A stretch of DNA of 50,358 nt from Selaginella moellendorffii (Eukaryota; Plantae; Lycopodiophyta): the NCBI RefSeq assembly GCF_000143415.4, contig NW_003314467.1:11824-62181 (forward strand), written 5' to 3'. The translations under genes were made by a program, and so were the position numbers. This document shows positions 4,669 through 39,745 of the stretch, piece by piece; the stretch's first letter is position 1; each line of letters starts with the position of its first letter. The notes beneath the pieces are model-generated. The model worked only from the letters and a program-made list of their open reading frames with translations, was not told where the DNA came from and ran no database searches.

Positions 4669-5070
4669 ACTCCACCACCCATAGAAGAAGTTCGATGCCC
4701 ACATCAAACGTCTCTTTTTTATCCTACGACTTGTTGACCATGTCTCCGGGGGCATCCCCCCACTTAGCGGTGTGCCTAAGTTAGCCTCCCCGGCCAAGAG
4801 CCCATGACAATGGAATATAGGTGTCCCTATACTCCTTACCTCACCACGCCCTAGTATGGGGTCAGGATTTGAACCCAGCCTTACTTTACTAGGGGGTTGG
4901 GACTCGAACCTAACCTCCGTAGAATACGTCTATGGATTTGACATCCCCGCAGGGAGTCGGGCATAGCTCTCTATGCCTGGTCGACCTAGCTAACCCATGC
5001 TAATTAGCTTACCTTCGACGCGCCTTTGGGTCCCAACATATGCCATTGCTCAACTTCACAAATTGATACT

Positions 5071-5885
5071 TTAATTGAACTTTGCATAAGTACATAGAGT
5101 TCTGCCTTGCAAAAATTCCTCCACTAGATTTTGCGCGTTCGCTAGGTTCTCCTCCGGTTCCCATGTTGCTTTGCAGTGCAGAAATCCTTTCCACTTCACA
5201 TGGAACTCTCTCACCTTGCGTCTTTGTCGCTTGCTCTTGCACGCATTGAGGATGGCCTCGACTTTGTATTCCTCTTCCCCTTGGATAACCTCAGGTAAAG
5301 GTCTTACTTGGTCCTTGCGAAGCGGATCCTTAAAATACGGCTTGAGTAAGTTCACGTGGAACACGGGGTGCATCTTCCCCATCTCTCGAGGAAGTTGGAG
5401 ACAGTAAGCCACTTTACCGATTCGAGCCTCAATCTCATAAGGCCCCACGAACCTACTTAAGGAACTCAAGATCAATTCATTTACAAGAATACATGCATTT
5501 TTACCTTTGGGTCAACTTCCGGCTGATCCCACTTGGTAGCCTAAGGTTCTTGGTGTTCAGCCACACCTTCTCCCCAGCTTGGAACTCTACATCCCGGCGT
5601 TTCTAGGTTGCATACTTTGTTTACCTTTATTGAGCCCGTTCTAAGGAATCCCTCACTAGATTCCAAATGTTGAGTCTTTCCGCCATGAATGCCTCAATTG
5701 CGGGTAACTCTCCATGATACTCGGCCATGCCGAGTTCCACAGGACCTTCAATAGCTCGCCCATTGATGACTTCCCATGGACTCACCCCGATGCTCGAATG
5801 TGGTGAGTTGTTATAACACATTTCTGCAAGTCCCAAATGACTTACCCAATCAGTCTAGTCTCCTGATCCATAGCATCGCAAATAA
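5071..5885 (-). pseudogene. Integrase C-terminus (GPY/F motif) and chromodomain of element 1
   Basis: LAEMCYNNSPHSSIGVSP, RFVGPY, HPVFHVNLLKPY, EEEYKVEAIL...FHVKWKGF...ATWEPEENL; in-frame stops and a 52-bp insertion. Confidence 0.9.
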
Positions 5886-5889
5886 TCCT

Positions 5890-8435
5890 AGGGCTACCTT
5901 TTTTAGTTCCCCTTCTGGAACATACACCCTTGTTTGCTTGTAATATATGTGTCTGTTGCGTTCTGCATAGCCCGTTTTCTCTTCCGTTGGCAGCTCACCT
6001 CTCTGGTGAGCTTCCCATGCCTCTAGATTCCTTAGCAACACTTCTTGTGCTAGACCATCATTCTCGTATGCGGTCCGCACATCATCCCAAAAGGTTGCTA
6101 TTGCACTGGATATTGCCAACTTCAAGCTCGCTTTTTGACTTAGTGCATCTGCCACGATGTTGCTCTTCCCAGGCTTGTACAGAATCTCGCAATCAAACTC
6201 GGCCAAAACATTGGCCCACCAACCTTGTTTTCCCCTTAGGTCGGGTTGTGACAAGAAGTGTTTCGTTGCCACATTGTCTGTGTAAACTTTGAAGTGTCTC
6301 CCAAAATAGTGTCGCCACTCCTTGAGCGCCTTGACCACTGCAAACAATTCCTTCTCATGGGCAGGCCACTTTTGTTGAGCCTTGTCCAACTTTTTCAAGA
6401 AAAACGCTACTGGATGGTTGTCTTGCTTCAAAACTGCGCCTAACACAAAGTCTGAAGCATCCATTTTTACCTCAAAGTCCTTACCAAAGTTTGGTAATGC
6501 CAACACGGGAGCCTTCCTCAACTTCCCCTTGAGGTGGACGAATGCTGCCTTGCATTCTGCTGTCCATACCATCTTCCCTTTTCCCGTTTGGTCTGTTAAG
6601 GGCAAGGCTATTCTCATATAGTGTCTGATAAAATTTCAATAGTAGTTGCATAGCCCCAAGAATGCCTTAACTCGTGTACATTTGATGGTCGCTCCCAATC
6701 CTGGATCGCTTGGACCTTCTCAAGGTCCACCTTGAGCTCGTCCTTGCCCACCACATGCCCAAGAAACTTTACCTCTTGTTGAGCAAAGTCACATTTGCTC
6801 TCTTTAGCATATAGCTGGTGTTCCCTTAATTTCTCAAACACCTTCGTCAAGTATTTGGCATGCTCCTCTAGCATTTCACTATAGATCAGGATGTTGTCAA
6901 TATAGACGACCACAAAGTGATCCAGATAGGGTACAAAGATATGGTTCATCAACGCCGAAAACGTTGCCGGCGTATTGCATAGCCCGAAGGGCATCACTAG
7001 AAACTCGAATCTCCCATACCTCGTTTGACAGGTTGTCTTCTCGACATCTTCCTCTGCTACCCTGATCTAGTAATATCCTGACCTTAGGTCAATCCTCGAG
7101 AAGTATTTTGCATTTCCCAACCTATCGAACAGGTCCTCAATCCTTAGCAAAGGGTACTTGTTCTTCTTTGTATATTTGTTGAGCAATCGGTAGTCTATGC
7201 ACATGCGCATAGATCTATCTTTCTTTTTCACGAATAGCACCGGCACCCCATATGGCGACTTACTCAACCTAACATACCCTTTGTCCACCAACTCCTCTAT
7301 TTGGCGCTTGAGCTCCGTGAGTTCCTTTTCGTTTAAACGATAGGGGGGACGAACCACCGCCTCAGCACCCTCGACCAACTCAATCTTATGTTTTATCAAT
7401 CGTGCGGGGGGCAACCCCGCCGGTAGCTCCTCCGGCATGGTATCCTGGAATTGATCCAACACCCGCTGGATCACTAAAGGTACTTCTTCCGTTCCTGTCT
7501 TTTTGTCACTTCTCACCGAGAGTAAGCACAAAAATGCAGCCTTGGTCCCTTTAGTGAGTTGTCCTCTCGTGGACACCACATTCAGTCACGAATCTTTGGC
7601 CTTGCATTGCCCTACCTTTAGATCCTAGGCCTCCACCCTGGATCTTCTTCCTTGGGCATTCGCCAGTACCACAAGGTTCCTACCTTGTCCATGCAGGGCT
7701 ACCACAAACCGATTGAACCAATCCATCCTAAAGATCATGTCAAATCCCGCCATGTCCAACACGGTGAAATCCATGTCTACTTTCGAAGTCCCTACTTCGA
7801 CTCTCGCTTGTTGAAGTACCTCATCGATGCTTTGGCTACCTTGAACAAAACTTTATAGTCCTTGGTTCGCCTAGCCATTGCACCGTTAGTCCGGCTTGCC
7901 GGACTATGTCTACAGCCACAAAATTATTCGAAGCACCCGTGTCAATAAGGATCTTAACAAAGCTACCTTTGAGCTTCCCTCGGAGGGCTAGTAGATGTCG
8001 CGAACGACTCTCTACCAAAGTTGCTCGTGTAATGAGTAACTTTGAGCTAGGGACTAGATCACATACCTCAGTTTGGACTTCACCCGACTTAATGGCCATA
8101 TTGGCTCTGGCCTTCTTCGGGTAGGGACATTCCCTCGAAAAGTGTCCCGCTTCACTGCAGTTGTAGCATATAGTGTTTCCCACGCTGCTAAACGACTTGA
8201 CCTTTTTATCCGTGGGTTTGTCTCTTTTTGCTTGACTCCCCCACGTACTTGCTCGCTGGCCACCGGATTTGCCTTTCTGGAACCCCAAGGACTCATTCTT
8301 AGAGAAACTCTTCTTGAATTTCCCTTTGCTAAACGTTCCCCTTGGTTTGGCCCCTTTGCTAAACGTGGATCCCGACCCCGTCGTGTTCCTCTTTTGCAGG
8401 TTATCATTGAAATGCACCTTGATGGCCGCATCCAA
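5890..8435 (-). pseudogene. Zinc knuckle, aspartic protease, reverse transcriptase and RNase H of element 1 (fragmented pol)
   Basis: [39 protein letters not shown]...VVYIDNILIYS, DASDFVLGAVL, ADALS; stops and frameshifts between the ORFs. Confidence 0.93.
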
Positions 8436-8462
8436 CGCTTCTTTGTAGTTGGTCGGGTTCCA

Positions 8463-9240
8463 TCACATCACCTCACCGCGAGCCCAGGTTTGCAAGCCTG
8501 ATATAAAGGCATGGAACACATCTATATCCCCCATGTCCGTGACAAGTATCCTCTTTGCCATAAACCCATTCACATACTCCTGAATGGTTCCGGGCTGCTT
8601 CAACTTACTCAACTCGTCTCTTAGATGTAGAGTAGCATTCGGAGGAACGTAAGTCGCGCAGATCCTCGCCTTCATCATGTCCCAAGTGGCCATTGGTCCT
8701 TCGTTGGCCTCCGTCGTTCTCCACCAAGACTTGGTATTATCTGCCAAGTATGGTTTTGCACATGGGACCTTCTCCGAGTTCGGTAACTGCAACGGTCGGA
8801 AGCAGTCCTCCATATCATAAAACCAATCCTCCACCACCTTATAGTCGTTCACTCCCTTGAAGACCGGTGGGGGCTTTGGTTTGTACTTGGGAACTGTCTG
8901 AGGGACTGATTCCACTTTGGTCTGTTTGACCTTGTTTGGTTCTGTCTCAGTCCCTACCGAAGGGTCTGCACCTTCTACGCTGCCAGCATCTGCAGTCTTT
9001 CGCTTTTTCTTCCACTTTTTGTCACACTTTAGCTTGTGTATGAGAGTCTCCAGTAGGGCATTGGTCTGTGCCAATTGTCCTTCTAGAATGTCCAATCGAG
9101 CATTGGATGACCGCACCTCGCCACCAGACTCTTGTTTGGAAGTTTTCTCACTGAAGTCCTCCTCATGCAAGGATTCCTCATCCATAGCCTCTTGTTCGAC
9201 CAAAGGCTCCAGCTCTGAAGGAGGTTCTGTCTCCACCATG
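8463..9240 (-). pseudogene. gag (retrotrans_gag-like) of element 1
   Basis: PKPPPVFKG...VEDWFYDME...TKSWWR...TWDMMK...LKQPGTIQEY; the TGA at 8463 is in frame with the downstream zinc-knuckle ORF. Confidence 0.88.
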
Positions 9241-9308
9241 GTTTGTTCCACCTTGCCTTTGCCATTTCCCAGCAATCTGCCTCTATCCTTCGCTAGAACT
9301 AAGGAAAA

Positions 9309-9321
9309 GGCTCCGATACCA
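9309..9321 (-). promoter_or_regulatory. Primer-binding site (tRNA-iMet type) of element 1
   Basis: Minus strand TGGTATCGGAGCC a few nt inside the 5' LTR; canonical is TGGTATCAGAGC. Confidence 0.88.
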
Positions 9322-9324
9322 AAT

Positions 9325-11354
9325 TGTAAGCCACAAATTTTTCCTTTCCAATTTGCCATCTTACCTCGTCTACCCGTCCAACACTGCCTTGACTTTTGCT
9401 AAGTTCCCTCGCCAAGGTTCCTGCCTATGGTACCAACTCCTACTTGGTCCTACTTGGTTTCAGCTACTCACTGCATGAGCAACGGAGTGTTAGTCATCCG
9501 TCCATGGATTCCCAAATCTCTCCCAATCCCCCTCCCCAGGTTAGACTGGACTTAAGGTTTGGCTACACTCCCCACAAGCACAAGCAGTCAAGCACACCAA
9601 GCCTCCAGGTTCCTAACACCCCTTGGTACAACAAGACTTGATCATGGGATGCTCTAAATCCCAAGCCTTGGGTGCAACATTTGCTTCGGGATATCGGGGC
9701 GGAACACCGTGGCCTAACGGCCCGGTATAGGTACCTCTACCCCCCCACTTCTATCCCGAAGGGAAGGCCCAAGCCCCTAGGAAGGGTGAGGACCAATGAG
9801 CCACAAGGTACTCAAGTGGGGCACCACTCCACATGAGCTGAGAGCACCGCTGTTGGTTTCTCATTCGGGAGTGGGAGCTGCTCTTGAGCACTTCCCTGGG
9901 CAGCAAGAGGAAGTTGAGGGAAGTGCTCTTCTTCCTCAAGAGCAGAAGAGGAAGAAGCCCTCCGGCACCACCCAAGCCCATGCTCACTCCCACTCCTCGG
10001 CCCCAGTCTCAACCTCAGGTCAGTTTGGAAGCACCATTGGAGAGTTCCTTCAAGACTGGTTCCTGGACCTCACTATCCCTACTATACTTTTGGAAACCCC
10101 TGCAGGCCCCCGCCCCTAGGAGATGCACGCTTTGAGCTTTCACCCCTTAACCCGTATTAGTACTTGGACTTAGTCTTGGATTCGATCTCGGACTCGATCT
10201 TGGACCCAACTTCGGACTCGGTCTTGGACTCGATCTTGGACTCGATCTCAGACTTGACTTCAAACTCGACCTTGGACTCAGTCTCGGACCCGATCTCGGA
10301 CTCGATCTCGGACCCGACTTCGGACTCGGTCTCGGACTCGATCTCGGACTCGATCTTAGACTCGACTTCAAACTTGACCTTGGACTCAGTCTCGGACCCG
10401 ATTTGGATCTCGGACTCTGTCTCGAACTCGGTCTCCGATTCGGCCTCGGACTCGATCTCAGACTCTATCTTGAACTCAGTCTCAACCAATGAGCTGCATG
10501 GTACTCAAGTGGGGCACCACTCCACATGAGCCGGGAGCACCGCAGTCGGGTTCCAAAAGTATAGTAGGGATAGTGAGGTCCAGGAACTAGTCTTGAAGGA
10601 ACTCTCCAATGGTGCTTCCAAACTGACTTGAGGTTGAGACTGGGGCCGAAGGGCCTTGGGTGGGAGTGAGCATGGGCTTGGGTGGTGCCGGAGGGGCCAC
10701 CCAGGGAAGTGGTCAAGAGCAGCTCCCACTCCTGAAAGGGAAACCGACGGTGGTGCTCCTGGCTCATGTGGAGTGGTGCCCCACTTGAGTACCTTGTGGC
10801 TCATTGGTCCTCGCCCTTCCTAGGGGCTTGGGCCTTCCCTTCGGGATGGAAGTGAGGGGGTAGAGGTACCCATACCGGGCCGTTAGGCCACAGTGTTCCG
10901 CCCCGATGTCCCAAAGCAAATGTTGCACCCAAGGGTTAGAATTTAGAGGGTCCCATGATCAAGTCTTGTTATACCAAGGGGTGTTAGGAACCTAGAGGTT
11001 TGGTGTGCTTAGCTGCTTGTGCCTGCAAGGAGTGTAGCCGAACCTTAAGTCCAGTCTAACCCGGGGAGGGGGATTGGGAGAGATTTGGGAATCTGTGGAT
11101 GGATGGCTAACGCTCCATTGCTCGTGCAGTGAGTAACTGAAACCAAGTAGGACCAAGTAGGAGCTGGTACAATAAGTGGGAACCTTGGCGAGAGGACTTA
11201 GCACAAGCCAAGGCAGTGTTGGTCGGATAGACGAGGTAAGCTGGCAAATTGGAAAGGAAAAATTTGTGGCTTACTCCGATGAACTCTTTGTCATTTTGGT
11301 CATGCTTTCGGGGATCCTTTAGCCTACGACACCTTAGCAAGTTGATTCCTTACA
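9325..11354 (-). repeat. Rearranged 5' LTR of element 1 with an internal inverted LTR segment (~10548-11274)
   Basis: Forward LTR 9325-10485 with an expanded GACTCG array (10160-10485), a short re-duplication 10485-10548, a reverse-complement copy of the LTR's first ~725 bp, then the normal LTR end 11275-11354. Confidence 0.88.
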
Positions 11355-13793: not shown

Positions 13794-13817
13794 AAGCTCT
13801 ATTTCGTTAAAGTGGGA
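13794..13817 (+). repeat. Left terminal inverted repeat (24 bp)
   Basis: Exact reverse complement of 26642-26665. Confidence 0.96.
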
Positions 13818-14569
13818 ATTGTCATTATCCCACTTGTAAAATAAGGTTTCCAAACCTTTATATAGTATATAAATATAACAAAATTCAATTGCATTGAGGC
13901 ACATGCCATTTTATTTTAAACAAGGAATGTCTACTCAATCACTTCTCCTCCCCCTGCCACTGCTTCACCTCTCTCTTCTCTTTGTCATCGTCGTCCAATT
14001 TCTTTCCATCCTTTTAATATTGGCTCAGTTGCTCCGAGTCTAGGTGGAGCCCAAGTCCCCATTCAATCTTTACTTTCCCTTTATTAATAAAACAACTTCG
14101 TAGACTTCCAATAACATGCTGTAACACTTCTAGTATAATGCAAATCCTCTCAAAGAATTGTCTTTTAATATTAATACAATGGCATGGAACCCCATGCCAT
14201 AATAAGTTACATTTTTAAATAAATACATGCCATCTCAGACTGTTATTTTTTGCCTCCAACGCCTATACAATAATCTTGGAATTTCATCACTCTCCACACT
14301 ATCAGGATTTAAACCCAATAGTAATGCCATCTCTTCTCTAATACGTCCACGCTCATGTTCAGTGGTCGAAGAATCCATCCGGTTGAGCAGATTATGGAGA
14401 TGCGGATAGTGCTTGGCTAGACAATATACATGCCATAAATGATGACTGGTGTCTGTCCGATCAAATGGCTTCTGATATACCGTTCCATCTGCCATTTGGT
14501 TGATTTCTGCAGCCACCTCCTGGACTGGCCGGTTCTCTATCACCATCGCTCCAAGCCGTTTTGCAAGGT

Positions 14570-15097
14570 CCCCCAGAACATACGGTTTCTTCTCCCTAGT
14601 TTCCATACTGCAAGAGATGGGGTGCACTGCATATGTGTGCGTGTTCGCTGCAGTTTTAATCGGCGAGTCATCGATGATGAGGATTTCACTTGAGCTAGCA
14701 GTCCGGTTCATCACTACAGCCTCTGGCTTGACGAAGATGGGCTTGCTACCCCTCACATGGACCATAGTCAAGCAATCCTCCTGCGTTAGGAGAAAGTCAA
14801 ATGGTAATATTACTCACGTCTGATCGTGCATCATCTGTAGCAACGTTAATGCATTGTGGCGCATCATGGATGTCCAAACTCCCAATTGCAAATTGAACCC
14901 GACCCTCTGTTTTAAGTGTCGCATGGTCATTATTAGATCCCGCAGTTTCTCCCGTGTGATTAATGTGAATCTGTCTCTTTTGACCAACTTGCGACCGCAG
15001 GCTTTGGAGGGTGCAATGACATTCGAGGACGAGCCACGCTCATGGGAGAAAAGGACACCGTTCAGATCAAAAACGATACAGTACCTTCGCCGTGACT
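14570..15097 (-). other. FCP1/NIF-like HAD-superfamily phosphatase domain
   Basis: CIVFDLNGVL, LGVWTSMMRHN, FDFLLTQEDC (read through the TGA at 14814), PIFVKP, ILIIDDSPIKTAAN...VHP. Confidence 0.8.
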
Positions 15098-17129
15098 CTG
15101 AAATGAAATGCGTCAGCATAAAAAATGGTACAAGTCAATTTTACCATCTACAATATTAGCGAATGTTGCTCCCGATGGTCGTTGAGAGGGTTTTGGTCGA
15201 GGAAACGTGAAGGGCGGAAATACTCTCCTCTGCAATGTGGGGTCAATCGCATCTGATGGCGTGTGGGCACATGCCATTTCAGCTGTAGACTCTGGTACAA
15301 CTGGCTCAACAGTGGCATGGGGTGGTTTCGATGGCGTGTGATCACACGCCATTTCAGCTGGTGCCTCCGTTGGCAAAGTGGACATGACCGAACAGGCAGC
15401 AGGGGCGGTGTAGGGAGGTTCCAACGGCGCGTAGTCAGACGATTGGGCACACGTTGAGTCCGTTGGAAATGAGGATACGACCGGCTCGGCGGCTGGGGCG
15501 GCCTCATGTGGGTCCAATGGCGCCTGGTCACCGTCAGTTGGATACGTGGACAAGATTGACTCAGTGGTATGGGCAGCATCAAGTGGAGCGTGGTCAGCTT
15601 GCTTGGCGTTGATATGGATAGTAGCCTCCACCAGCTCTGATGACTCTTGCAGCCAAGTAGAGTCCACTGGCGGATCCATATGCATGTCCAAATATCTCCC
15701 TTCGATTGAGATGGTATCCTCCCGTGCTACTAAAAACAAACTCATTATCACATTGAATCGACTATACTGTATTTACTATCAACTGCTATTGAGGAACTAG
15801 GACCGATATCACTTGGGCGCACTGCTGATTCTGAAGGATTGGACATACGTTTCGACCCTTGCTTGGCACTATCCTTCCTCGACACTAAAGGCTAGAGTTT
15901 GTAAATTCAACTGAATAATCTCTACTTACCATTTGCTCTGCGACCTACATGGACAATGTTAGAAATGGTAAAAGGTTAGGAATGGATGTACTATTATTTA
16001 CCTGATGGTTTGTCTTGTATGACCTTCCTCCGCTGCTCTTTGGCCACCTCAGGCTGGCCATCGTCGTCATCATCGTCGTCGTCGTTATTGTGATCGTCAC
16101 CATTGTGAGGACCATCCAAGTCCTCTTCGTCCTCCTCTTCTTTGTCCTCCTCTTCGTCCTTCTGCTCTTCCTGCTCATTATCTTTCTCTGGCTCCTCATC
16201 CCCCTCCTGCATTTCTTCCATAGGCTGCTCAGGCTGGATGGCTTGTTCTTCCAGGACCATCTTGGGAAAATCATCTGGCCGAGTCTCCATCTCAAAATAC
16301 AAGACATCCATAGCCTGTTTTAGTGCGTGACCTAGGACCGTATCCTCACCCGACTGTCTTAACATGGTTTCTGCACGTTCTTGCACCCTTCGAAGATGAC
16401 AAGATGAGAAAAATGTGGCCCTGACTTGAAAAGCTTCCCTCATCCATTGTACCTCTCCATTGAGATTGGGGAAGGGGAGTCCGCCATAGGAATCTGAGTC
16501 ATGAGGTGGTGACTGCCTGCTTTCACTCAGCCCTTGATCTGCAATGAATGGCATGAGCACACACGCCATAACCGCGAGACATTACCTATCATCTTTTCGT
16601 TGCCCTTCTTCCTTTTCGAATCAAACGCCTCTGATCTCGACGACTGTCCAACGTGCTTTCGCTTTTTATGACCACTGTCAATTTGAGCTTGGCTGGTGCT
16701 TGCCTGTTTTGCCTTTGAAGAAGTTTCTCCTGCAAGGAATGGCATGAGACCACACGCCATTGCAAATATAATTTGTACCTCCTTTTTTCCTATTGCTTGT
16801 CTGTTTGTCCTTCTTCGATGTGCCACCAGTGCGCTTTTCAGTCCTCGTGTCTGAATATTCACAACGATCTATAATCAAAATGGCGTGAGGCCTCACGTGA
16901 CCTTACCTTGTGCAGGTTGTGAGCTCGGCCCAACATGGGTATCTTCAACAGTAGCTGTTAACGCCGTTTTAGCATCTGGGGGTGGCCACGCTCCTGCATA
17001 CAGAGCTTGTGAGATAACATTTAAACTTAAAGTGTGTACTCACCAGGTTCGCAGAGAAGATACTGTTTTTCTTTGGCAACTGTAATTATATGCTCCATTG
17101 AAGTCACCTCTTCAATGGAGTTTGTCACC

Positions 17130-17700
17130 GCAACACACGGGACACCCTTGAGTAGTGCGGCTCGAAAGAATAGTCCGCCGCAGTTGTACTCGACAACGCA
17201 TTTGCCCTTGGAGTCGGAAGCATGTGACCCACCCGCTATTGCGTTGAAGACCCAGCTGAGCATTTCCCATGTTGCACCTGGAGCTTTCTTTGGATTCGAA
17301 AGCTCCATAGCCGTCTTCAGTTCCTCAGGCACGGGTAAATTGACCTCCCTCAGATCAATTCGATTGGCCTTGTCGAACGAAGCTGGGAAGTCACTCCAGT
17401 CCCACTCTGCTGCAGGACCAATAACAAGGGCGAGTGTGAAGATGCGGACATTCGTCGGTATCTTCTTCTTAGCCATTATCCCATGGATCTCCCGCATCTC
17501 CTTGCCTTTCAACCGAGCCTTCACCTCGTTCAAGGCCTTCTAGAACTTGTGATAGGATTCGGAGTCGTAGATCATATAGTGGACTGAAGATTCCACCTCC
17601 GCAAGTCCCACCATTAAGTCAATGATGGAGCTGACTTCGTCTGCATGAGTGATCTCCTCGTTTGTGAAGTCCATCACACAAAAGATGTTCTTGACCTGCT
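17130..17700 (-). other. Degenerate beta-class DNA amino-methyltransferase-like Rossmann domain
   Basis: IFCVMDFT (motif IV position, DPPY lost) ... NPKKAP...EMLSWVF ... GKCVVEYNCGGLFFRAALLKGVPCVAV (cf. GD.VLDPFCGSG.T..AA...GR..IG). Confidence 0.45.
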
Positions 17701-18299
17701 CATCTCCGCGGGAAACGATGCTCCTCCACCTTTGATCCTCATCCGAATTCAAGTATACCCGGTAAGGTTCTCGATAGGCCTCTGCTGCGGGGTCGAGCTA
17801 TTTCTGAAGCCGGCGGTCGACATCAATCTTAATGAAATTTGGATACTGATCCAACTTCTCAGCTTTACTTTTCGTGGCATCCCGCAGCAGATCGATGAAC
17901 TTGGGGGCCCCCTTCACGTACTCGTCGATGTCTTCATTTGACAACTCCAGCGCTTCCATCATCTCTTGCGTGGTGTCGATGCTCACCCTCTCCACGGCCA
18001 CTTGCTCGAAGATCCAATCCTTCAATAGCGCACGAGCTCTCAGAGTCATGCGCAAGTCCTCGTATGTCACAATATGGCCGGGAGTCATTCTGGTCTTGTT
18101 GAAGACTACCTCACCACGTAGAAGAGCATTAGCCACTGTCAGAAGGTCGTCGTCGTCTAGAGACCGCGAGAAACGCAAGGCGTTGAGCTTCAAATCATTG
18201 GGCTTCCGGCCGTCCTCCACACCCATTGAGTTTAGCAACTCCCCGTCATGGTACCTCCTCAGCACATCTACCCATTTGTCAAAAACAACTTTTGTCGCG

Positions 18300-18935
18300 A
18301 GTAGAATGTTATGGATGCTGAGTGTGTCATTGACCCCCAGTGTTTTCGAGAGAAGACTCGAGAATTCCTGCAATGGAAATGGCGTGAGGCCACATGCTAT
18401 GCCACATGCAACGAGGCTTACCTGCCAGGCGCTAGTTGCTAGTGCACGTCCTTGTCCTGGTTTTTGTGGCTTCTTCAGTTGAACCCAGAGCTTCCGTGTT
18501 CGTGCCAATGTCTCGTGCAGACCCGATTTGTAGCACGTTTCTTGCTTGACATTCTGCGCGTGGGAGATGTATATGATAGATCGGAGGGGCGAGTTGCCTT
18601 TTATCAGGCGGACAACTCTTGTCTTGAAGACTTTCTTCACCTCCTCGCCCACCATAATATCCACAACTATCTCTTGCATCGCCAAGCTAGAATGCTGCCC
18701 GGAGACGGCATAGAACCGGATGTTCTGATCGTCCAACACCTTCCTATTGATCAAGTTTGGAAACCTCGTCTCGCCCTTCATTGTTCGGTAGTAGGGGATC
18801 ACGTCTGCGATGTCGGGTGTTACTGGACTTGCCAGCATCTTCTGCTTCAGTTTCTCCACCCACTCATCAGATACTAGCCTGTGGTTGTATTTGCTTTGGA
18901 TGTCGATACGGCTCACGTCGATTGTATATACTTTG
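18300..18935 (-). other. ParB/Sulfiredoxin-like domain followed by a putative helix-turn-helix
   Basis: TIDVSRIDIQSKYNHR-LVSDEWVEKLKQKM...FYAVSGQHSSLA...ISHAQNVKQE...LHETLARTRKL parallels ParB I.I..I....YQPR..DE..L..L..SI...Y.II.G.RR..A...ALIEN.QRE...IEEA..Y..L; EFSSLLSKTLGV...SIHNILL sits where the ParB HTH lies. By eye only. Confidence 0.65.
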
Positions 18936-19959
18936 TTCGAATAGTAACAAGTACTATTATCTACGACGATTTTTGCTGCCTCTTCTTGCTCTTTCTGCTC
19001 TTTGCGGCTCTTCTTTTTGGTGGGTGTAGTGTTTGAACCCGAGGCAATGGCATCACTGAGTAGCTTCTTTTTTGGACTAGGAGAGTCGGACGTCGGCTTG
19101 AGCTTGACCACCCTTTTCTGCTTTGAGGTAGTTTCCAAATCGACCCCCTTCCCCTTTGTTTCGCGAATTGGAGTCACTCTCAACGGCTCAATGTTGGAAT
19201 ATAGTTTTTGAACATCGCCGTAGGTGAGGTCCGTAGATTCCATGTGATATTCATAGACCCGCAGCGTCTTTGAAATTGTGGGCCTCCTGGACAACCTCTC
19301 CCTAGCTCCCTCTAGGAATTCCTCATAGCCGCTGCCCCCCTCCGGAAAGCCGCTAGGATGTGCAAGGTGGATCTTGAAGGCAGACGCTGTCTCTACCACA
19401 AGTGCCAGTCCATATTCTTGCATGGAACTGCATGGAGTGTCTGTCACTTGGATGAGGATCCCCATGCATTCTTTTCTCCCACCATCTGTGTTGTACAGCC
19501 TCAGATCCTCGCCTTCCATCCCGAAAGTCCAACTGGTGAGCTCCTCCCCCTTCTCTGCATCCACATTGACAGTGGCTGGAAGAAGAACGCAATTCCTCGC
19601 CTGTTCAGAAATGCACAACAATTAGAGCTGATAGATGAAAAGCTAGTAGTTGGAAATAACGTGAGGCCACACGCCATTCACCACTGCATCAGATGTCTTG
19701 AGGCTGCATCCTAAGATGGCGTGAGGCTACACGCCATCTGTAACCGGACTGCACTCGAGAGCCCAATCGGTGCATGCCAATGTTGCTACTGAATGGCATG
19801 TGGCCTCATGCCATTTTCTACTTGGCCTAAAAGACTTACCATTTGAAGCCGAATGGAGGCGTGACAACCGGACTCGCTGGCGAATGTGCACTGTGTGTGC
19901 AGCGGATCGTAGCAGCAAGGCTACTCTGCCACTTACAGTTGGAGAGTGGCGCTGAAATC

Positions 19960-22090
19960 TCCCGGGACGCCAAGTGGGCTGCGTGTGGGTGGCGGAGTGG
20001 GCGGCGGAGTTGGCGGCGAAGTTACAAACTGGGTGTGTCTTGAAGTGGACGCCAATGCACACGAGCGCGATGCGAGCGCGAGTGTGATGCAAGCGCGAGT
20101 GGACGCCGATGCACACGAGAAACCTGTAGAGAAGTGGGAGCGCAATGCGAGCGCGAGTGTGCGAGCGCGAGTATGAAGCAAAATGCAAAACCTAACCTCA
20201 CACGCGCGAAATGTCACGACGGTTGGTAATCCTGCCACGTCATCATTTCTCGGACTTGGGCGCCACCATTAATTTCTGGATCGGCGCGCGCATGCGTGAA
20301 ATCCAAAAGAAATCCGCAACGTCATCATTTCTTGGACTGCATGCACGCGGAATCCAAAAGAAAGATCATGATTGGGATATCATTTAATACCCTCGCTATA
20401 TTTATACCATACATGATTGGATATTCCAAAGCATCTTGTATTTCCAAAAATGCCAGATGTTCAGCTAAATAAATTATCAGAGGATTTGATGTGACGTTCA
20501 AGCATGTGGGCTCATGCAATTTTGATCCCAAAAAATGCACCAAAAAATGCTCGGCGTCATCTGGCGTTATCTCTTGAATGGCGTGGGGCCGCATGCCATT
20601 TTCAGGAGCACATAGGAGTATATTCGTAGAATATTCTGACACGCGCGAGATTGTTTTGAGTTTCCTGGAGATCCAACCGTTAGATCGCAACTAGATTTTA
20701 CAGAATGGTATACAATGTCCTTCTTGATGACCCTGCAAAGAAGCATCTCGATCGGACACCACATGAGACCACACGAGCCTTACAATGTTTCAGGGGCATT
20801 TGCCATAGATCCGACCGTTATTTTGCTCCAAGATTCTACAGTTTGGTGTGCATTGACCTTTCCATCGACACTGCAAAGGGACATCACAATCAGATGCGGG
20901 ATCACAAGAAACCAACTTCACTAACTCTGGTTTCACCAAGATCTACGTAAGGAGTTATGAAATGAAAGGACCCTCTTTATTGAAATGTGTTTATGGTCCT
21001 AGGGGCATTGTGACATATCAAAAGATTTTGCATCAAGTTCTGTATTTGCATGTTTATCAAGCTACTGAATTGCTAAACCCTAAACCCTAAACCCTAACCC
21101 TAAACATGTGGCAAATGCTGCGTGAAGAAAGATGCCCTTTCTGGGCAAATGCTGTAAGAGGCAGATTCCGAGCAGATGTATCTCAGGCCAGCGAAGGGGA
21201 CAAACGAAAGCTATCTATAAACATGACGGGATGCAAATAGATTACTAGGCTGGTCCTGCGAAAATCAAAAACCATAATTGAAAACATTGAAAATGCAAAA
21301 AGAAAGGTTTATAATATTTTTGAATTTTAAGCAACCAAATGAATGTAAGTAGGGCATGTGTTTGTAAGTTTAAAAATGCCTCAACCACTTAAATTCCCAA
21401 GTAAATAAAGCTGTTTCTATTTTTGGTACAGGTAAACTTTATAGCGTGTGGGCTCATGCAATTTTGAACCCAAAAATGCACCAAAAAATGCTCGACTAGC
21501 ATTATTCTTTGAATGGCGTGTGGCCTTATATTGCCATAAATGGACGTACACACACAGCATAATTATTCCTTTACACGGCGAATAATCTTGGCGCGGATCG
21601 CTGACATGGCATGGCAAAGTTCAAATCACTGACATGGCACAGCTGGATCGAGGCAAGGACATGATGTGACAAAGTTCAACCTCCGACAGCAAAGTCTAGA
21701 AGCTACTCAGTTTGAAATTTGTCAGAGGAATCATAAGATCTGGTTTGTCAGAGGATTTGATGTGACGTTCAAGCATGTGTTATTTTTGAATTCTCGAACT
21801 CATTCCTAGGTCTATCATTTTTGTGCGCCGTGTTCTTGGTTCCGCTGAGCGCAGTGAGCGTTGCTTGTGTAAGCGGCGTTGTGAGCTGTGGTTTATGCGT
21901 CTACAAGCGGTTGCGGCATTGCGAGCGCCATTGCGAGCGGCAGTTTATGCGAGTGGCAGTTTGTGCGAGCGGCGCTACGAGCAGTTGCGGTGTTGCGAGC
22001 GGCGCTACGAGTAGTTGCGGTGTTGCGAGCGGCACTGTCTTTGGTGTGGCTACCGCTTCCTCTTGATATTCGGCACTTGTGCTTCCTGGT
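19960..22090. promoter_or_regulatory. Divergent promoter/5'UTR region of the DNA transposon with short GC-rich tandem repeats and duplicated blocks
   Basis: GCGAGCGCGAGT repeats (20040-20175); ~30-bp GTTGCGAGCGGC-containing repeats (21905-22035); blocks of 20477-20600 repeated at 21441-21530 and 21748-21779; lies between two oppositely oriented genes. Confidence 0.6.
21073..21105 (+). repeat. Short plant telomere-type (CCCTAAA)n tract / telo-box cluster
   Basis: CTAAACCCTAAACCCTAAACCCTAACCCTAAAC. Confidence 0.85.
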
Positions 22091-22390
22091 ATGTTCACCA
22101 TTGAATGGTTTAGGACCACATTTAGAAATGGCATGAGGCCACATGCCATCTTGGGCCCTTGCAATTTCATGGCTAGCGTATTGTCATGTATGTTTTTACT
22201 TGCCTGCAGCTGTGTGTATATCAAGATGGCATGAGGCCTCATGCCAATTTTGTGAATGCGAAATTTCACGTGGGTGTCAATAGCATGTTTGAATAATGGC
22301 ATGTGGCCTCATGCTATTTGGTATGTTATGATTTAGGCCATTCTCCCATCATTTTTTGTATGGTCTTAACTTCTTTTCTGCACTTTCAGA

Positions 22391-25300
22391 ATGGCCTTCA
22401 GGGTTGGGGAAAAGGTTTACATTTTGAATGGTGGGAAGAGAGTTGCAAAAAGGACCCTTGTGTCTATGGATCGGAACTTTGTTATACACTGTCAAAGGCT
22501 TGGGGAAGGCAATGCTGCTGTATCAGTAGAGAATGTCTTCGATGGGAATGTGGTCGCTATTGAACGAGGAGAGATGGTCGTCGGGGTAAATGTTGTTGTT
22601 GCCTTGAAAAATCTGCAGAAGAAAGTAGATGTTGGGGACAACACAAGTGCGACGCATGTTCCCTCCGTGGATCTTAAGAACCGTGCTACATGGATTCAGG
22701 CAAAGGTGTTTCTAAACAACCCCGAGGGGGAGGTGGTAGCTGAGGGCTTAGCCACAGTTGTCGATCCAAGAGATGCGGTTGCTAATCAAGAATTGGGCTG
22801 GGATGATATTGGAGTTGCGATTTTAGAGGTTGTTGACACAGAAGAAAATAGTCTAACTATTGGAAGCATTGTGCGGTGGAAATTGAGGCATTTAGTGTTT
22901 GAGAATGTGAAGGATTCACAATCAAACACCACTACAACTGATGACAGAACATCTCTTCATGGGAAAAGAAAGTACACCTTCCTACAGCGCAGCCAAAGGG
23001 ATCTGAGCAACGAACCGAAAAGGCAGAAAATGGCGATGGAGGTTCGAATGGTCTCGACAGTTGCTTGTTGCAAGAGGAGGTGTTGTCAACATGCTGATTG
23101 GGATGCTATTGAAGAGGAGAGAGCAAGATACAAGACATTGTCCTGGAAGGCAGCTCGCAATTTTGTGTATGAGGCATTACGGTCATTTGTTGATGCTTCA
23201 GAACATCAGGTGGGGGGCATGGTCTTCCAGAGGGGTTTGGTCTGCATGAAGGCATGGAGAATCATTTATGGAGTCCCTCGAACCACATTCTACAGAATCA
23301 AAACTGAGTTCGAGGAACAAAGGGTTCAACAGGCAGTCCATGGGAACGACGGTACGCACAAAACCAGGGGTCATGTTGTATATGGAGAGGCAATCTTCAA
23401 GAGGTTTGTCGAGACATGTAGCGAGCAGCAACCACATAAAACCCGCCTCTTGGAAGATGGAACACGAGACACCCAACGAGTTCTACCTTCCATGTATACC
23501 AAGGGGGCCATATTGGAAGATGTGAATCGGGAACTCCAGAGTAATGGCTACAGGAAGCTGAGCCAATCTAGATTTAGTAGATTGTGGAGCAACAGGTTCA
23601 GGGATGTGAGTATAGGAAAGTACTCCAGCTTTTCAAAGTGTGACGAGTGCACTGCTATCAAAATGGCTTTGTCGAAGAATTCTTGCAGCGCTCAAGAGCG
23701 AGAGACGTTGGTTAGAATGCGGCTCAACCACAACATCGAGCAGAGAAGCTGCAGGACTGCATATTATCATAACAGGATTCTCTCCATGGAGAGACCTGAC
23801 TCTTACCTCTGCATCATCCACGACAAAATGGACCAGAAAAAGACGTGCTTACCTCGACTCAATCCTGCTCCCAAGGCAATCTCTTCATCGATGCAGCTGC
23901 CTGTGTCTCTGTTTGGCATAATCGCTCATGGGCATGGTGCCCAGAACTATGGGAACTTCTTTGTACCTCTATGGGGTGGCGGGGGTGCAAACATGATGAT
24001 TGCGTCCCTAGCAAAACACTTAAGGTCTCTGCAAAGTGCGCAGACTGAGCTGAACGGCCAACCCTTGCATAAGGCCCTTGTCGATCGAACCCCATACAGG
24101 GTTCAGCTGGAGGAGGAGCAAAGGCTTGCAGTATCGCGTGGGGCCCCATGCCATCCCAGTGAATATGTTGGCCGTCAGATTGTAGGGTTATCACGTGAGG
24201 CCTCATGCCATTCCGACGAGGCTGGTCGCCCGGTGAATGCACAGCCTCATCCAAATGAAGCAGAATCTCAAGGAAGTTCTTGCGGCCGATGTGGCCTTCC
24301 ACCCCATCTTCTGCTCCAAACAGACAATGCTGGCAGTGAGAACAAAAACATGTACGTCTTCGCGTACTTGGCGATGCTTGTTGCCAAAGGCATATTTGAA
24401 ACGGTTACACTTGGCTTTCTCATGGTTGGGCACACTCATGAAGACGTCGATGCCATGTTCAGTCACCTGGCAGAGTCCCTCCAGCGATCCAATGTCCTCA
24501 CCCTCCCACAACTCTACGATGAATTCCAAAATTGCATCAAAGGCACTGTTGAAGCTGCACTTGTGACAGAGGTTCCAGACTTTAAGGGGTTTGTAAGAGG
24601 CTACATCAGGGACGGATCCGAAACGCTGATTGGCCACTCCAAGCCTCTTCAGTTTCATTTCAGCATGCGTGACGGTGCTCTAGTGATGAGGTACAAGATG
24701 AGAGAATGGGACACAGTGTGGCTCCCAGTGGATGGCATTGAACTCTTCAAGAGAGATCCCATAACTGGGGAACCTATGATTCCTCAGGGTTCCCCACAGC
24801 CGATGCACCCGGATGGACTCAAAGACCAGGAAAGTATAGTGGCCGGGATTAGACAGCATATTGCCTTCTGGAAGAGGGGGTTGGTGTTTGGTATAGAATC
24901 CTATTTTAAGAGGTGCAAGCCTTTGCTCAAATACTGGGAGAAGATTATATTTGCTATCCAAAATGGGCCGGTTGTATATGAAGAATTGGAAGAGTCCTTT
25001 TGGCCAGAACCCAGAGCACCAGATAGTAGCGGAACAATGTCCTCTGGAAATGCAGTGACAGATAATGATGTTGAGGATCACTATTGTGGGCCGAGGAACA
25101 AGAAGCCGGATTCAGCATTCAATCCAGTACAGGTCTGCAAAGGAATGGTCGTGCTTGTCAGACCCAGTAATAAAAAACAAATGATATGGGTGGGGCACTG
25201 CATCACTGATGCAGAGGAGGACGCGGAAACTAACTCCTTCAATGTAACTGTGGAGTGGTTCAAGCCAAGTTCCGGATATACGAAGGATTGCCTAGAAAAG

Positions 25301-25532
25301 AGATGGGTGCTGAATCCAAGGGATCCCAGCATGAGCATATCGGTGGATAATGTTGTGCATGGTTGGATGCGGAAGCAGAGTGCCACCATCACCTTGCCAG
25401 ACCATGCAAGAGATGCAGCAAGAGCATTCATAACCCGAGTTCAAGGTGAGATTCATTAATATTCCTTTAGTAAGTTTCTAATGTATTTTATTTCAAGGTG
25501 AACAATCCGAATCTGAATCAGAGGAGGCTTGA
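22391..25532 (+). CDS. Putative DDE/D transposase (Sola-like/DUF7869-type), ~1,030 aa, apparently intact
   Basis: 1022-aa ORF with CCKRRCC, VCMKAWRIIYGV, HGN, FSKCDEC, IIHDKMDQ, LLQTDNAGSENKN, FLMVGHTHEDVDAMFS; two N-terminal Tnp1/EnSpm-like (DUF8039-like) repeats; C-terminal BAH/Tudor-like beta domain; likely intron 25446-25497 and last exon GEQSESESEEA* to 25532; lies between TIRs. Confidence 0.85.
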
Positions 25533-25747
25533 TATAGTGTGTGAGGTAAAACAAAGATGATGTGACATATGCATTTACCAATCACACGTGCATAAATCTA
25601 ATAATATGGCATGTGGCCCATATTAATGGCACATAAACCCATATTGTGGGCTTACGTGCTTTATGTACCATCATTCCCTTGCAGTGTGTGTGTTGGTTTC
25701 CTTTTATAACACAACGAACTCCATATTTTAGGGTGAAGAGCGTTCTC

Positions 25748-25988
25748 ATGGCAAGCACAAAATCTGTAAGTGAGGTAGAAAAGGAGACGGAGAAGGAGAT
25801 AGGTGAAGATGTAGAATATATAAGTCTTCNNNNNNNNNNNNNNNNNNNNNNNNNNNNNNNNNNNNNNNNNNNNNNNNNNNNNNNNNNNNNNNNNNNNNNN
25901 NNNNNNNNNNNNNNNNNNNNNNNNNNNNNNNNNNNNACAACTGACCCGGAGAAGGATGATAGTACCACTGAGAGTACCAAAAAGGAGG
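25748..25988 (+). other. Short acidic exon-like sequence interrupted by an assembly gap (possible third gene of the transposon)
   Basis: MASTKSVSEVEKETEKEIGEDVEYISL...TTDPEKDDSTTESTKKE followed by a GT donor and a palindrome-containing intron-like stretch. Confidence 0.3.
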
Positions 25989-26641
25989 TGTCCACTAGCG
26001 CTTAGGCTTATAATGGCGTGTGCCCTCATGCCATTTACTTGATCACCAAATACCTTTTTCCCTTTGCACTAGTATATCTTAATACCGGTCTGAGAAATAG
26101 AATGGCATGTGCCCTCAGGCCTTTTACTAAATCACCTTTGAAAGAAATGCAAGCCTCTATGTCGTAAAAAAAAGGTACTAGAGAAATTCCTTAATAATAT
26201 GAATGTTATTTAGTTTCATGAAAATACACTAAGGGTCAAATGAGTTAAATGACTTCTCCAGACTAGCAATGCCTCTTGCTACACCTTCACAATTAGATTC
26301 GTTAGAAAAAGATAACATTGAATAATATCTAAATGTTCTCACCATTAAGTTATATGTCTAGCTAATAGGAATGACGTTCATCTTGGAAAGCTCACCACAC
26401 GCTCAATGAACAAACAAATAGTGTGTGCGCGCATGCCATCGCTCTTCTTTAGCTTCAGATTCGGCTTGTTCACCTTGACAATGAGATTTATTATACAACC
26501 AGATGGACTCAGTCTGGACACAAAGTCACCGCGCTAGTCACCATGCCCCAGATATGTCTAGCCCCTGGACAAAAAACATATAATTTCACGTCATTTTCAA
26601 ATACTTGAAAATTTGTACCTAGTCCCATTTTACTGAATAAA

Positions 26642-26665
26642 TCCCACTTTAACGAAATAGAGCTT
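26642..26665 (-). repeat. Right terminal inverted repeat (24 bp)
   Basis: TCCCACTTTAACGAAATAGAGCTT followed by the TSD TGAA. Confidence 0.96.
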
Positions 26666-34702: not shown

Positions 34703-35301
34703 CTCTCCCCCCTTTGGGGAAGATCGACGTCCTCGTCAATGCATACCCGAGTCTAGCAAACCATCAAGGAAACAACTCCAAAAGTTAACGGAAAGCACAC
34801 TATGTGGGAAACACACCGACTTAAATGAGTTAAGAAACGACCTCTCCTCTATGTCCAAAAATGTTAAGACTCAGACACCCTCCGGCCGTCGCCGACAAGA
34901 AAATGACTAACAGAGTTAGCCACCCTTGCTACTCTGAGTACCACTCAGCTTACAAAGGAATGATACATCCCTGCCCGTAGGGACATAGGGAGAAGGCCAA
35001 CTTCCCCTGAGCAAGAAATCAACCCCGTCGGGAAGATTTAGACAATTATTATAAACTGGCAGAGTAAGTTGTTTACACAACCATGCCCCTTGTCGAAAAT
35101 AGCCATCAAGAGAGAGGCAGGGACTTGTGATCAGTCTATAATAGTTATCCCCATGGTTATGGATTGGACCCATGCACCAAAGTGCCGAAGTCAGCTTGCC
35201 AAAACTGACCCAAGTACTAACGAACGAGAGAAATGACAATTTGATTTATAGAAATATATTACTTTATTAATTGGCAAGATTTATTACAATATTTACAAAA
35301 G

Positions 35302-36366
35302 CTAATCTTTATTACGATTCTCATATTTCGTGACAAGCTCACGAGCATGGGTAAGATTTCTAAGAGGTTCCCAAGTTGATTCACAAGTCGGGTAACCTTT
35401 CCACTTAACTAAATATTCCTTGGAACGACCACCACGAGCTTTGCGAGACAAGAGAGTTGCTTCGACCTCATACTCCATGTCACCATTCACAACTTCCGGA
35501 GGGGGATGAATGTCCATAGAGCGATCCGCATCAACACGATATGGTACCAGTAAACTGACATGAAACACATCATGTACAGTGGACAACTCATCCGGAAGAT
35601 CCAACTTATAGGATACATCACCAACTTGTGCCAATACCTGATAAGGGCCAACATATCTTGGCAAGAGCTTCTGAGACATAGAACCCTTAATGTTCAAGTT
35701 TCGGGAAGATAGCCACACCTGATCTCCCACTTGATAGGATACATCCCGATGATGCTGATCCTTATCATGTCGATACCTATCCTGAGCTTTGCCCATCGCC
35801 TCAGTAGCTCTAGACCAACCTTGGCATAGCTGCTCTACATAAGTTTCAACGGCTGGGACCAACACTTCGGGCTTTGGTTTCGATACAACGATCTGTTGAG
35901 GAACCCCACGAGCATTCCCTTGCAGCATCTTCCATGGAGAACAGCCTATAGCACTGTGAAATGTGTTGTTATAACAGATTTCTGCTGTATCCAAATGCTC
36001 AACCTAGTCGTGTTGGTCCGCCGCGACATAGTACCGCAGATAATCCTCAACTTGAGCATTCACGCGTTCGGTCTGCCCATCAGTTTGAGGATGATAAGCC
36101 GTACTAAACTTCAACTTGGTACCAAACAACTAGAACAGGGTTCCCCAAAACTTCCCCGTAAACCCTGAATCTTTATCTGAGATCATTTCTTCAGGAAGAC
36201 CACAAACTCGCACTACTTCATGGAAAAAGAGCTTTGCTGCTTGTTTCGCATTTACTGTTCTCACAGTTGGAATGAAGTGTGCAATCTTTGACAACCGATC
36301 CACAACCACCATCAAAGTATCATAACCCTTAGACTTCGGCAAACAAGTGACAAAATCAAGTGTCAC
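35302..36366 (-). pseudogene. Integrase core, GPY motif and chromodomain of element 2
   Basis: TLDFVTCLP...VVDRLSK...ISDKD...; RYVGPY; VFHVSLL; EYEVEATL...YLVKWKGYP...TWEP; in-frame TAG stops. Confidence 0.92.
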
Positions 36367-36414
36367 ACTTTGAAATGGCCATGCTGGTGCTGGAATGCAC
36401 TACAACTTTCCAGC

Positions 36415-38949: not shown

Positions 38950-38985
38950 ACTACCCGTTCCACTAGGAGCAGGTTTTGTAAGTTG

Positions 38986-39720: not shown

Positions 39721-39745
39721 AACTTCATCGTCCTCTAATACCAAA

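Follow-up and report, generated by a model that had tools for sequence, protein, structure and literature searches.

The window analysed here, 50,358 nt of Selaginella moellendorffii contig NW_003314467.1 (positions 11,824 to 62,181), contains a DNA transposon of 12,872 bp, located at 13794-26665, that encodes a putative DDE transposase of the family DUF7869 and encloses every copy of a 22-bp palindrome. We infer, with confidence slightly better than even, that these palindromes are dyad sites for a dimeric protein encoded by the element, most likely the transposase, and are used in self-recognition. Docking sites for the element's own protein appeared most likely because distant relatives carry the same type of word in another spelling.

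Allowing up to 2 mismatches, the pattern ATGGCRTG-N6-CAYGCCAT had 20 matches in the window versus 0.04 expected from shuffles; allowing up to 3, it had 21 versus 0.58. All lay between 13888 and 26439, with none in the remaining 37 kb of the window; the 8-mer half-site alone was found 35 times in 13888-26439 and 5 times in the rest. Together with at least three additional degenerate copies, at 20497, 21501-21525, and 25606, these matches made the "about 24 copies" of an earlier sequence-only reading a fair count. The preference for introns and non-coding DNA described there was also confirmed. Ten of the 21 copies were situated in predicted introns, two were intergenic, five lay in 3′ or subterminal DNA, and only four were in frame within open reading frames (ORFs), a strong deficit because about 62% of the element is coding (binomial P about 7e-5). 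The intronic copies comprised three in a 239-nt intron of a second gene, three in the putative leader intron of the transposase gene, and one in each of four introns of 38-54 nt. The four coding copies were located in the disordered, hypervariable linker of the transposase, between its first and second catalytic blocks (24133 and 24190), and in a Pro/Thr-rich linker of the second gene. The outermost copies were 94 and 226 bp from the element termini.

Information values were calculated from 42 half-sites folded onto one another. The consensus, 24 bp including the flanking A/T, was A-ATGGCGTG-W-GGCC-W-CACGCCAT-T. Half-site positions 1, 2, 4, 5, 7, 8, and 10 possessed 1.6-1.9 bits and positions 3, 6, and 11 possessed 0.8-0.9 bits, while position 9 had 0.28 bits, the pair 9/14 being nearly unconstrained. 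The flanking A/T (position -1) had 0.6 bits and the positions further out 0.03-0.19 bits, in agreement with the previous remark that flanks differ between most copies. The site is a sharply bounded 24-bp dyad. A few copies did belong to local duplications: the pair 15256/15331, 75 bp apart; the pair 24133/24190, 57 bp apart; and those in a dispersed unit of about 95 bp (20497-20599 versus 21441-21540, 81% identity). Conserved arms around a variable centre had been proposed; the arms were indeed conserved, but the centre was not free, as GGCC at positions 10-13 was retained in 14-20 of the 21 copies. The spacer was N6 in 10 of 10 exact two-arm matches when spacers of 0-20 were allowed.

The R/Y (purine/pyrimidine) variation corresponded to CG versus CA/TG within the CpG of the half-site, with 23 half-sites altered at the inner C against 1 at the outer, so that constraint opposes mutation pressure here. 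Neutral CpG decay as the source of this variation was ruled out by the 23:1 asymmetry, which together with the sharp motif borders argues for site-specific constraint and indicates one tolerant position beside a constrained neighbour, as in a protein-binding matrix. The variation had been described as symmetry-preserving, a description that did not hold, since mirrored positions varied independently within the element. Copies with complementary bases numbered 10 at positions 6/17 (9.4 expected from independent columns), 7 at 9/14 (7.2), 12 at 3/20 (12.6), and 13 at 11/12 (10.9). The search for compensatory pairing that the same reading called for thus yielded no excess at the variable mirrored positions, and in the absence of compensatory variation nothing among the copies of the element favours a hairpin. 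None of the 40 best-supported differences among genomic copies fell in 12 palindromes (up to 3 mismatches) of a 6-kb stretch, versus about 1.8 expected, which was not significant.

Custom scripts were used to search 88 DUF7869 loci for recurrent dyads. At least 10 of them, encoding transposases of 27-36% identity to the window protein, had arrays of their own, differently spelled palindrome next to the ORF, whereas 0 of the 88 shuffled loci had recurrent dyads. At least nine different spellings were observed across lineages (Table 1), nearly all of 22 bp. Relative to the transposase ORF, the arrays were upstream, downstream, or in its intron; L020 and L021 each had a copy of their own palindrome within a transposase intron. 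Substitutions between sister lineages were mirrored, at positions 2/21 and 9/14 between L022 and L031, whose genes are 82% identical, and at positions 7/16 between L020 and L034 (73-79% identical). Within lineages the halves decayed independently, with 696 complementary pairs versus 689 +/- 5 in shuffles, and pairing equalled the independent-column expectation in the window and eight other lineages. As the lineages share a dyad, nearly always of 22 bp, with different letters, it is geometry and symmetry, not spelling, that are conserved. Array size shifted fast, from 16 copies in L002 to 7 in L003 at 85% identity. A ParB-like gene, the second gene of the window element, was not found in 80+ DUF7869 loci by tblastn with 21 ParB-like queries; loci without a detectable one include L002 and L003, with 10 kb of upstream DNA, and L020, with 5.5 kb. 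This leaves the transposase as the sole candidate binder that the loci have in common.

The protein predicted for the transposase ORF possessed the invariant residues D478, D645, and E684 in the blocks IIHDKMDQKKT, LQxDN..ENKN, and GHTHEDxD, as seen in the alignment of homologues. Residues 551-634 form a linker that is disordered in the AlphaFold2 (AF2) model and hypervariable in length among homologues. Matches in AFDB were to DUF7869 proteins; such proteins, from plants, algae, and animals, also make up the relatives, few of which are close. Sequence profile searches against Pfam, NCBIfam, and PDB returned DUF7869 only, and Foldseek against PDB returned only weak matches of N-terminal beta-barrels (Tudor/Agenet/KOW/BAH-like) and a low-probability PIWI match. 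Two small beta-barrels were modelled in residues 1-170 (window 22391-22900), with weak PDB matches to Tudor, Agenet, BAH, and KOW, and a further one at the C-terminus, residues 919-993; these barrels may represent a chromatin-targeting module. Protein-language-model and structure searches linked ISAzo13, the prokaryotic kin of Zator, to some DUF7869 clusters, which is a hint only. The arrangement of an AG followed by ATG at the end of the putative leader intron recurred in L005 and L020.

A functional dyad, and not tandem amplification, had been suggested before from the pattern of variation and because flanks differ between most copies. Compensatory variation is missing among the copies of the element, but the suggestion itself is supported by the 22-bp palindromes of relatives, the mirrored substitutions, the fixed spacing, and the position-specific constraint. 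Between a dimeric protein site and a hairpin, the evidence leans towards the former: the spacing is fixed, the halves decay independently, neither strand is favoured, and some copies lie in probably untranscribed DNA. By this interpretation, two inverted half-sites at a fixed distance would be read by an element-encoded dimer, the likeliest reader being the transposase, the only protein common to all palindrome-bearing elements. The sites would be kept dense where sequence is dispensable, that is, in leader and internal introns, intergenic DNA, 3′ and subterminal DNA, and disordered linkers, and would mark the element as self. Likely uses would be assembly of the transposition complex at the ends, control of the two divergent promoters of the element (auto-regulation or anti-silencing), or both. 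Protein and sites would co-evolve, with the spelling turning over between lineages in both halves together while length and symmetry stay fixed.

Several observations weigh against recognition by the transposase. Its clearest helix-turn-helix (HTH; residues ~286-308, ...TSFYRYK) was highly conserved between lineages with different palindromes and is for that reason unlikely to determine specificity, and no variable DNA-binding module was found in the protein. Only 5 of the 21 copies lay within ~650 bp of an end, the rest being internal, unlike classical subterminal transposase sites, and in the copy L001 the right end was reduced to 134 bp without a palindrome. Arrays were present in only about 10-11 of the 88 loci, and the more distant long contigs (L024 onwards) had none. 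Finally, the homologues of the ParB-like gene in L006 and L089 also had dyads in introns or leaders, so that the second protein remains a candidate reader in this lineage.

Reading by this second protein, which would load on the palindromes and coat, bridge, or regulate the element DNA in the manner of ParB, Noc, or KorB, for example for self-recognition or against silencing, was judged unlikely, although it fared best among the alternatives. Its ParB/sulfiredoxin (Srx)-fold domain was modelled confidently (AF2 predicted local distance difference test, pLDDT, 82-96). A VIA structure comparison of model residues 230-363 gave Z 11.5 and a root-mean-square deviation (rmsd) of 2.0 A over 95 residues with the ParB proteins of M. 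xanthus and C. crescentus, and the Foldseek top 30 were all ParB, Noc, KorB, PadC, or sulfiredoxin. With Noc, ParB, and KorB, some alignments were longer and extended over model residues 228-504, a hint of a following helical DNA-binding part, but the HTH part was weakly modelled. ParB-family proteins bind short palindromes as dimers, and dyads were also seen beside homologues: the intron of L006 at the position of window 18368-18421 held a 29-bp palindrome, GGGGGGGTCGAGAC-T-GTCTCGACCCCCCC, with a half-site in the upstream intron, and the leader of the ParB-like gene of L089, from another organism, had degenerate dyads. In contrast, at least 10 DUF7869 lineages had arrays of the same geometry without a detectable ParB-like gene, 5-10 kb of upstream DNA being covered in three of these; parS, NBS, and OB sites are 13-16 bp, compared with 22-24 bp here; and Pfam ParBc did not match the second protein even at E<=10. 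The arginine-rich box II (GERR; GERRxRA) of CTP-binding ParBs was replaced by SGQHS, and by DGQHT in P0015, so that a CTP-dependent clamp is doubtful. An equally unlikely proposal is that the element has acquired a ParB-superfamily protein fused to further domains, among them a NIF/FCP1-like phosphatase part, with the palindromes as its loading sites, laid over an older transposase-palindrome system common to all DUF7869 elements. If true, a transposon-borne ParB/parS-like self-recognition would mark the whole element, for example against silencing or for joining copies or ends, and a ParB-fold cargo gene that binds palindromes would be surprising in its own right.

A role in nucleic-acid structure was considered improbable. 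The palindromes would be pre-mRNA hairpins that aid the splicing of unusually short, GC-rich introns or present a branch site, or DNA cruciforms or hairpins in transposition or replication. Ten copies are in predicted introns, and arrays of relatives are in apparent leader introns with AG just before ATG. In 4 of 4 short introns the palindrome ended 9-11 nt before the AG and a sense-strand CTCAY, resembling a branch site, was present 15-17 nt before it. When the four were folded, two formed an 8-bp hairpin beyond shuffles (z about -2.5), but the others (+0.45 and -1.2) formed none, and other short introns of the second gene lacked a palindrome. Both arms change together between lineages, yet no lineage showed excess pairing within it; G-T and A-C combinations were at chance level, so neither strand is favoured. 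The loop length was strictly fixed, which a hairpin does not need, and some copies occupied coding linkers or intergenic DNA that is probably not transcribed.

The palindromes could also be micro-repeats without function, selfish or neutral, that local duplication, slippage, and short-tract gene conversion would have spread inside the element and that persist only where harmless, a reading to which we give a similarly low probability. Some copies belong to the clear duplications described above, the arrays of relatives are tandem and labile in number, four copies were lost from the window relative to the copy L091, and purifying selection on the genes alone would yield placement in dispensable sequence. 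However, convergence of all the independent lineages on a perfect 22-bp dyad would call for constraint, and mirrored substitutions between sisters need selection or a symmetrising mechanism. The 23:1 CpG asymmetry and the sharp borders again speak for site-specific constraint, and most copies had unrelated flanks without flanking direct repeats, so that no simple duplication or insertion mechanism fits. Insertion of a mini-transposon, such as a miniature inverted-repeat transposable element (MITE)-like or introner-like one, was rejected, as identical flanking 2-4-mers occurred at chance frequency and no direct repeats flanked the copies; a TGAA flanking each palindrome like the target-site duplication (TSD) of the element was rejected too, because flank information was about zero beyond position -1.

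Both ends of the element had terminal inverted repeats (TIRs) of 27-28 nt, 96% complementary, detected by an inverted-repeat search of the window. Position 26665 was also the point where the homology of two independent copies, L001 and L091, ended; the identical right terminus of L001 was followed by AAAG, unlike the TGAA of the window. The element is highly repeated, 28,715 assembled pieces from one DNA run covering 6 kb of it. L091, a Logan contig, was 98.5-99.7% identical to window 24405-26665 and had exactly 107 nt at the site of the assembly gap, with no palindrome and a small ORF open across it; the two sides of the gap are therefore very probably continuous, and the gap has no effect on the finding. 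L091 also contained, at its nt 1126-1552, ~416 bp absent from the window near ~25530 and holding four further palindromes, so that intact copies carry at least 25. The lost region also had repeated GGTGAACAAxCCGAAT modules, with the microhomology GGC.TGAT at the junction. L001 (1-3577) was a deletion derivative, missing window 24524-26531 and 22400-22643, inserted in reverse-transcriptase sequence of a long interspersed nuclear element (LINE); it started with another palindrome, GCCATTAGTGGTACCACTAATGGC, made of half-sites facing outward. The two copies were 97.5-99.7% identical to the window, too similar for a comparison of conservation per site.

Two Ty3/gypsy chromoviruses flanked the element, at window 4000-10800 and 35300-39850, both with gag, protease, reverse transcriptase, RNase H, integrase, and chromodomain; the surroundings were otherwise AT-rich. 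Between the divergent genes, at window 21073-21105, there were 4.9 units of the plant-type telomere repeat CCCTAAA, which looks like a telo-box cluster, and one DNA contig had telomere-type repeats inserted at 19380/19467. GC-rich short tandem repeats (GCGAGCG-type, periods 12-30) were situated in opposite orientation at 19973-20172 and 21913-22033, each tract being followed by three palindromes and then a gene start, so that the 5′ regions of the two genes are mirror images. A 38-bp piece, 19900-19937, matched an abundant RNA in run X30, in which the reads ran into unrelated sequence on both sides; the match is probably due to chance or to a captured fragment of a highly expressed RNA.

The second gene was predicted to encode the ParB/Srx-fold domain (residues ~225-363), a long helical part, an acidic linker, a Pro/Thr-rich repeat, and a C-terminal part. 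Its introns were predicted from restoration of the frame and had no RNA support. Removal of six GT-AG segments of 239, 54, 50, 38, 49, and 47 nt gave one frame of 1,123 codons with two TAG stops, at 17798-17800 and 17540-17542. Position 17800 was G (CAG) in most, essentially all, other genomic contigs, making this stop private to the window copy. The gene is thus intact in the family, of which the window copy has decayed slightly. The 54-nt intron was at a position after W-Q/K common to homologues of the ParB-like gene. In the 38-nt intron, 22 nt are palindrome; the frame demands its removal, yet its length is very low for a spliceosomal intron in a plant. An unspliced contig from run X20 spanned the intron 16539-16585. 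Apart from the unrelated 38-bp match, run X30 contained no reads from the element, and the X20 contigs were unspliced or fragmentary, with no spliced reads. With the ParB-like protein as query, a word-based search yielded no homologue; an exhaustive one yielded only 20 weak relatives, all of them lacking a Pfam domain. In L089, 514-5221, a ParB-like ORF, a 578-aa ORF, and a NIF/FCP1-like ORF followed one another on the same strand, so that the three-part composition of the second gene is conserved; the NIF-like ORF supports a phosphatase-like C-terminus of the predicted protein.

Table 1. Features of the transposon in the window and palindromes of related DUF7869 loci
Feature	Position	Strand	Description
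Left TSD, TGAA	13790..13793	.	read from sequence
Left TIR	13794..13820	+	AAGCTCTATTTCGTTAAAGTGGGAATT; inverted-repeat search
Palindrome	13888..13909	.	left subterminal, 94 bp from end, 2 mismatches
Palindrome	14179..14200	.	3′ region of second gene
Second gene, multi-exon	14238..19842	-	frame analysis
Palindrome	15256..15277	.	in frame, Pro/Thr-rich linker/repeat, AEMACAHTPS
Palindrome	15331..15352	.	in frame, Pro/Thr-rich linker/repeat, AEMACDHTPS
Predicted 47-nt intron	16539..16585	-	holds palindrome 16548; frame analysis
Palindrome	16548..16569	.	intronic
Predicted 49-nt intron	16730..16778	-	holds palindrome 16739; frame analysis
Palindrome	16739..16760	.	intronic
Predicted 38-nt intron	16869..16906	-	holds palindrome 16880; frame analysis
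Palindrome	16880..16901	.	intronic, 3 mismatches
Predicted 54-nt intron	18368..18421	-	holds palindrome 18379
Palindrome	18379..18400	.	intronic
Predicted 239-nt intron	19601..19839	-	ATG/GTAAGT...GAACAG directly after ATG; removal keeps frame; contains palindromes 19656, 19716, 19793
Palindrome	19656..19677	.	leader intron, second gene
Palindrome	19716..19737	.	leader intron, second gene
Palindrome	19793..19814	.	leader intron, second gene
Palindrome	20578..20599	.	intergenic; within ~95-bp duplicated unit, which also has degenerate copy 20497
Palindrome	21441..21462	.	intergenic; second copy of ~95-bp unit, with degenerate copy 21513-21537
Putative 5′ leader intron, transposase gene	22088..22389	+	GT 22088, AG 22388-22389, one base before ATG; predicted from sequence; contains palindromes 22128, 22226, 22296
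Palindrome	22128..22149	.	transposase leader
Palindrome	22226..22247	.	transposase leader
Palindrome	22296..22317	.	transposase leader
DUF7869 putative DDE transposase ORF, 1022 aa	22391..25459	+	PF25273, 1.5e-42
Palindrome	24133..24154	.	in frame, SRGAPCH, disordered hypervariable transposase linker
Palindrome	24190..24211	.	in frame, SREASCH, same transposase linker as 24133
Assembly gap, 107 N	25830..25936	.	bridged by copy L091
Palindrome	26013..26034	.	right 3′ region
Palindrome	26102..26123	.	right 3′ region
Palindrome	26418..26439	.	right subterminal, 226 bp from end
Right TIR	26639..26665	-	inverted-repeat search; end of homology with other copies
Right TSD, TGAA	26666..26669	.	read from sequence; matches left 4 bases
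Palindrome of L002			GTTATCGTCG-NNN-CGACGATAAC (23 bp); 16 copies, spacing ~57 bp
Palindrome of L003			L002 motif, GTTATCGTCG-NNN-CGACGATAAC; 7 copies
Palindrome of L005			CCTATGGCC-CTTT-GGCCATAGG; 12 copies
Palindrome of L008			ATTTGGCCAT/ATGGCCAAAT; 4 copies
Palindrome of L009, L011			GCTCAAAC-N4-GTTTGAGC; 2 and 4 copies
Palindrome of L020			TTTACGGACG-CG-CGTCCGTAAA; 10 copies
Palindrome of L022			CCCACGGGTG-AA-CACCCGTGGG; 8 upstream at 47-bp spacing, 2 downstream of ORF
Palindrome of L031			CTCACGGGCG-YR-CGCCCGTGAG; 4 copies
Palindrome of L034			TTTACGAACG-NN-CGTTCGTAAA; 12 copies

The family DUF7869 was not mentioned in the literature searched. Its proteins occur widely among plants, algae, and many animals and are now placed in mobile elements with a conserved cis-architecture, for which arrays of a lineage-specific 22-bp dyad provide a practical annotation signature. 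Like Sola and Zator, the window element is a large TIR element with a DDE-type transposase. Bao et al. in 2009 are said to have reported that Sola makes 4-bp TSDs; the 4-bp TGAA of the window element fits, a thin point as it comes from a single insertion. Zator makes 3-bp TSDs (PMC10045372), and no 3-bp duplication fitted the termini of the window element, whereas a 4-bp one did.

The window element shares with the ParB/parS, Noc/NBS, and KorB/OB systems a gene for a protein of the ParB N-domain fold beside many copies of a palindromic site. Unlike bacterial ParB/parS, the setting is a eukaryotic transposon, the GERR box is missing, the site is longer, and palindrome-bearing relatives lack the gene; co-occurrence of gene and sites was not seen across the 80+ DUF7869 loci.

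Subterminal arrays of sites are common in transposons and are assumed to aid synapsis or restrain activity, and the ends of piggyBac contain 19-bp palindromes, to which a pair of cysteine-rich C-terminal domains from a transposase dimer binds (PMC11707139). Similar to piggyBac, piggyBat, Tol2, Ac, and En/Spm, the window element has short element-specific motifs, confined to a transposase-encoding element bounded by TIRs and TSDs, and as in piggyBac they have a dyad symmetry suited to a transposase dimer, with copies near both ends. They differ from the piggyBac type in that 21-25 copies are scattered along the full 12.9 kb, with internal introns and coding linkers among their positions, instead of being concentrated within a few hundred bp of both termini, and in that the transposase is from an uncharacterised family, its binding being a prediction.

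VANDAL elements of Arabidopsis have family-specific motifs, clustered in their introns and upstream regions, to which the anti-silencing VANC proteins bind and with which these proteins co-evolve; the motifs are 8-9 bp, directly oriented, and non-palindromic (PMC5735166). Like these Mutator-like elements (MULEs), the window element has dense motifs in introns and upstream non-coding DNA of its own genes, three in the leader of each, and the motifs differ between lineages, with fast turnover of arrays. Unlike them, its motif is a 22-bp dyad, and domain searches found a MULE or VANC domain in neither gene. The DUF7869 lineages thus offer at least nine natural candidate protein/site pairs for studying the co-evolution of a transposase, or a partner protein, with its DNA sites, and the window element would be a testable case of a transposon with recognition sites in introns and disordered linkers throughout its body, achieving by other means what the VANC system does.

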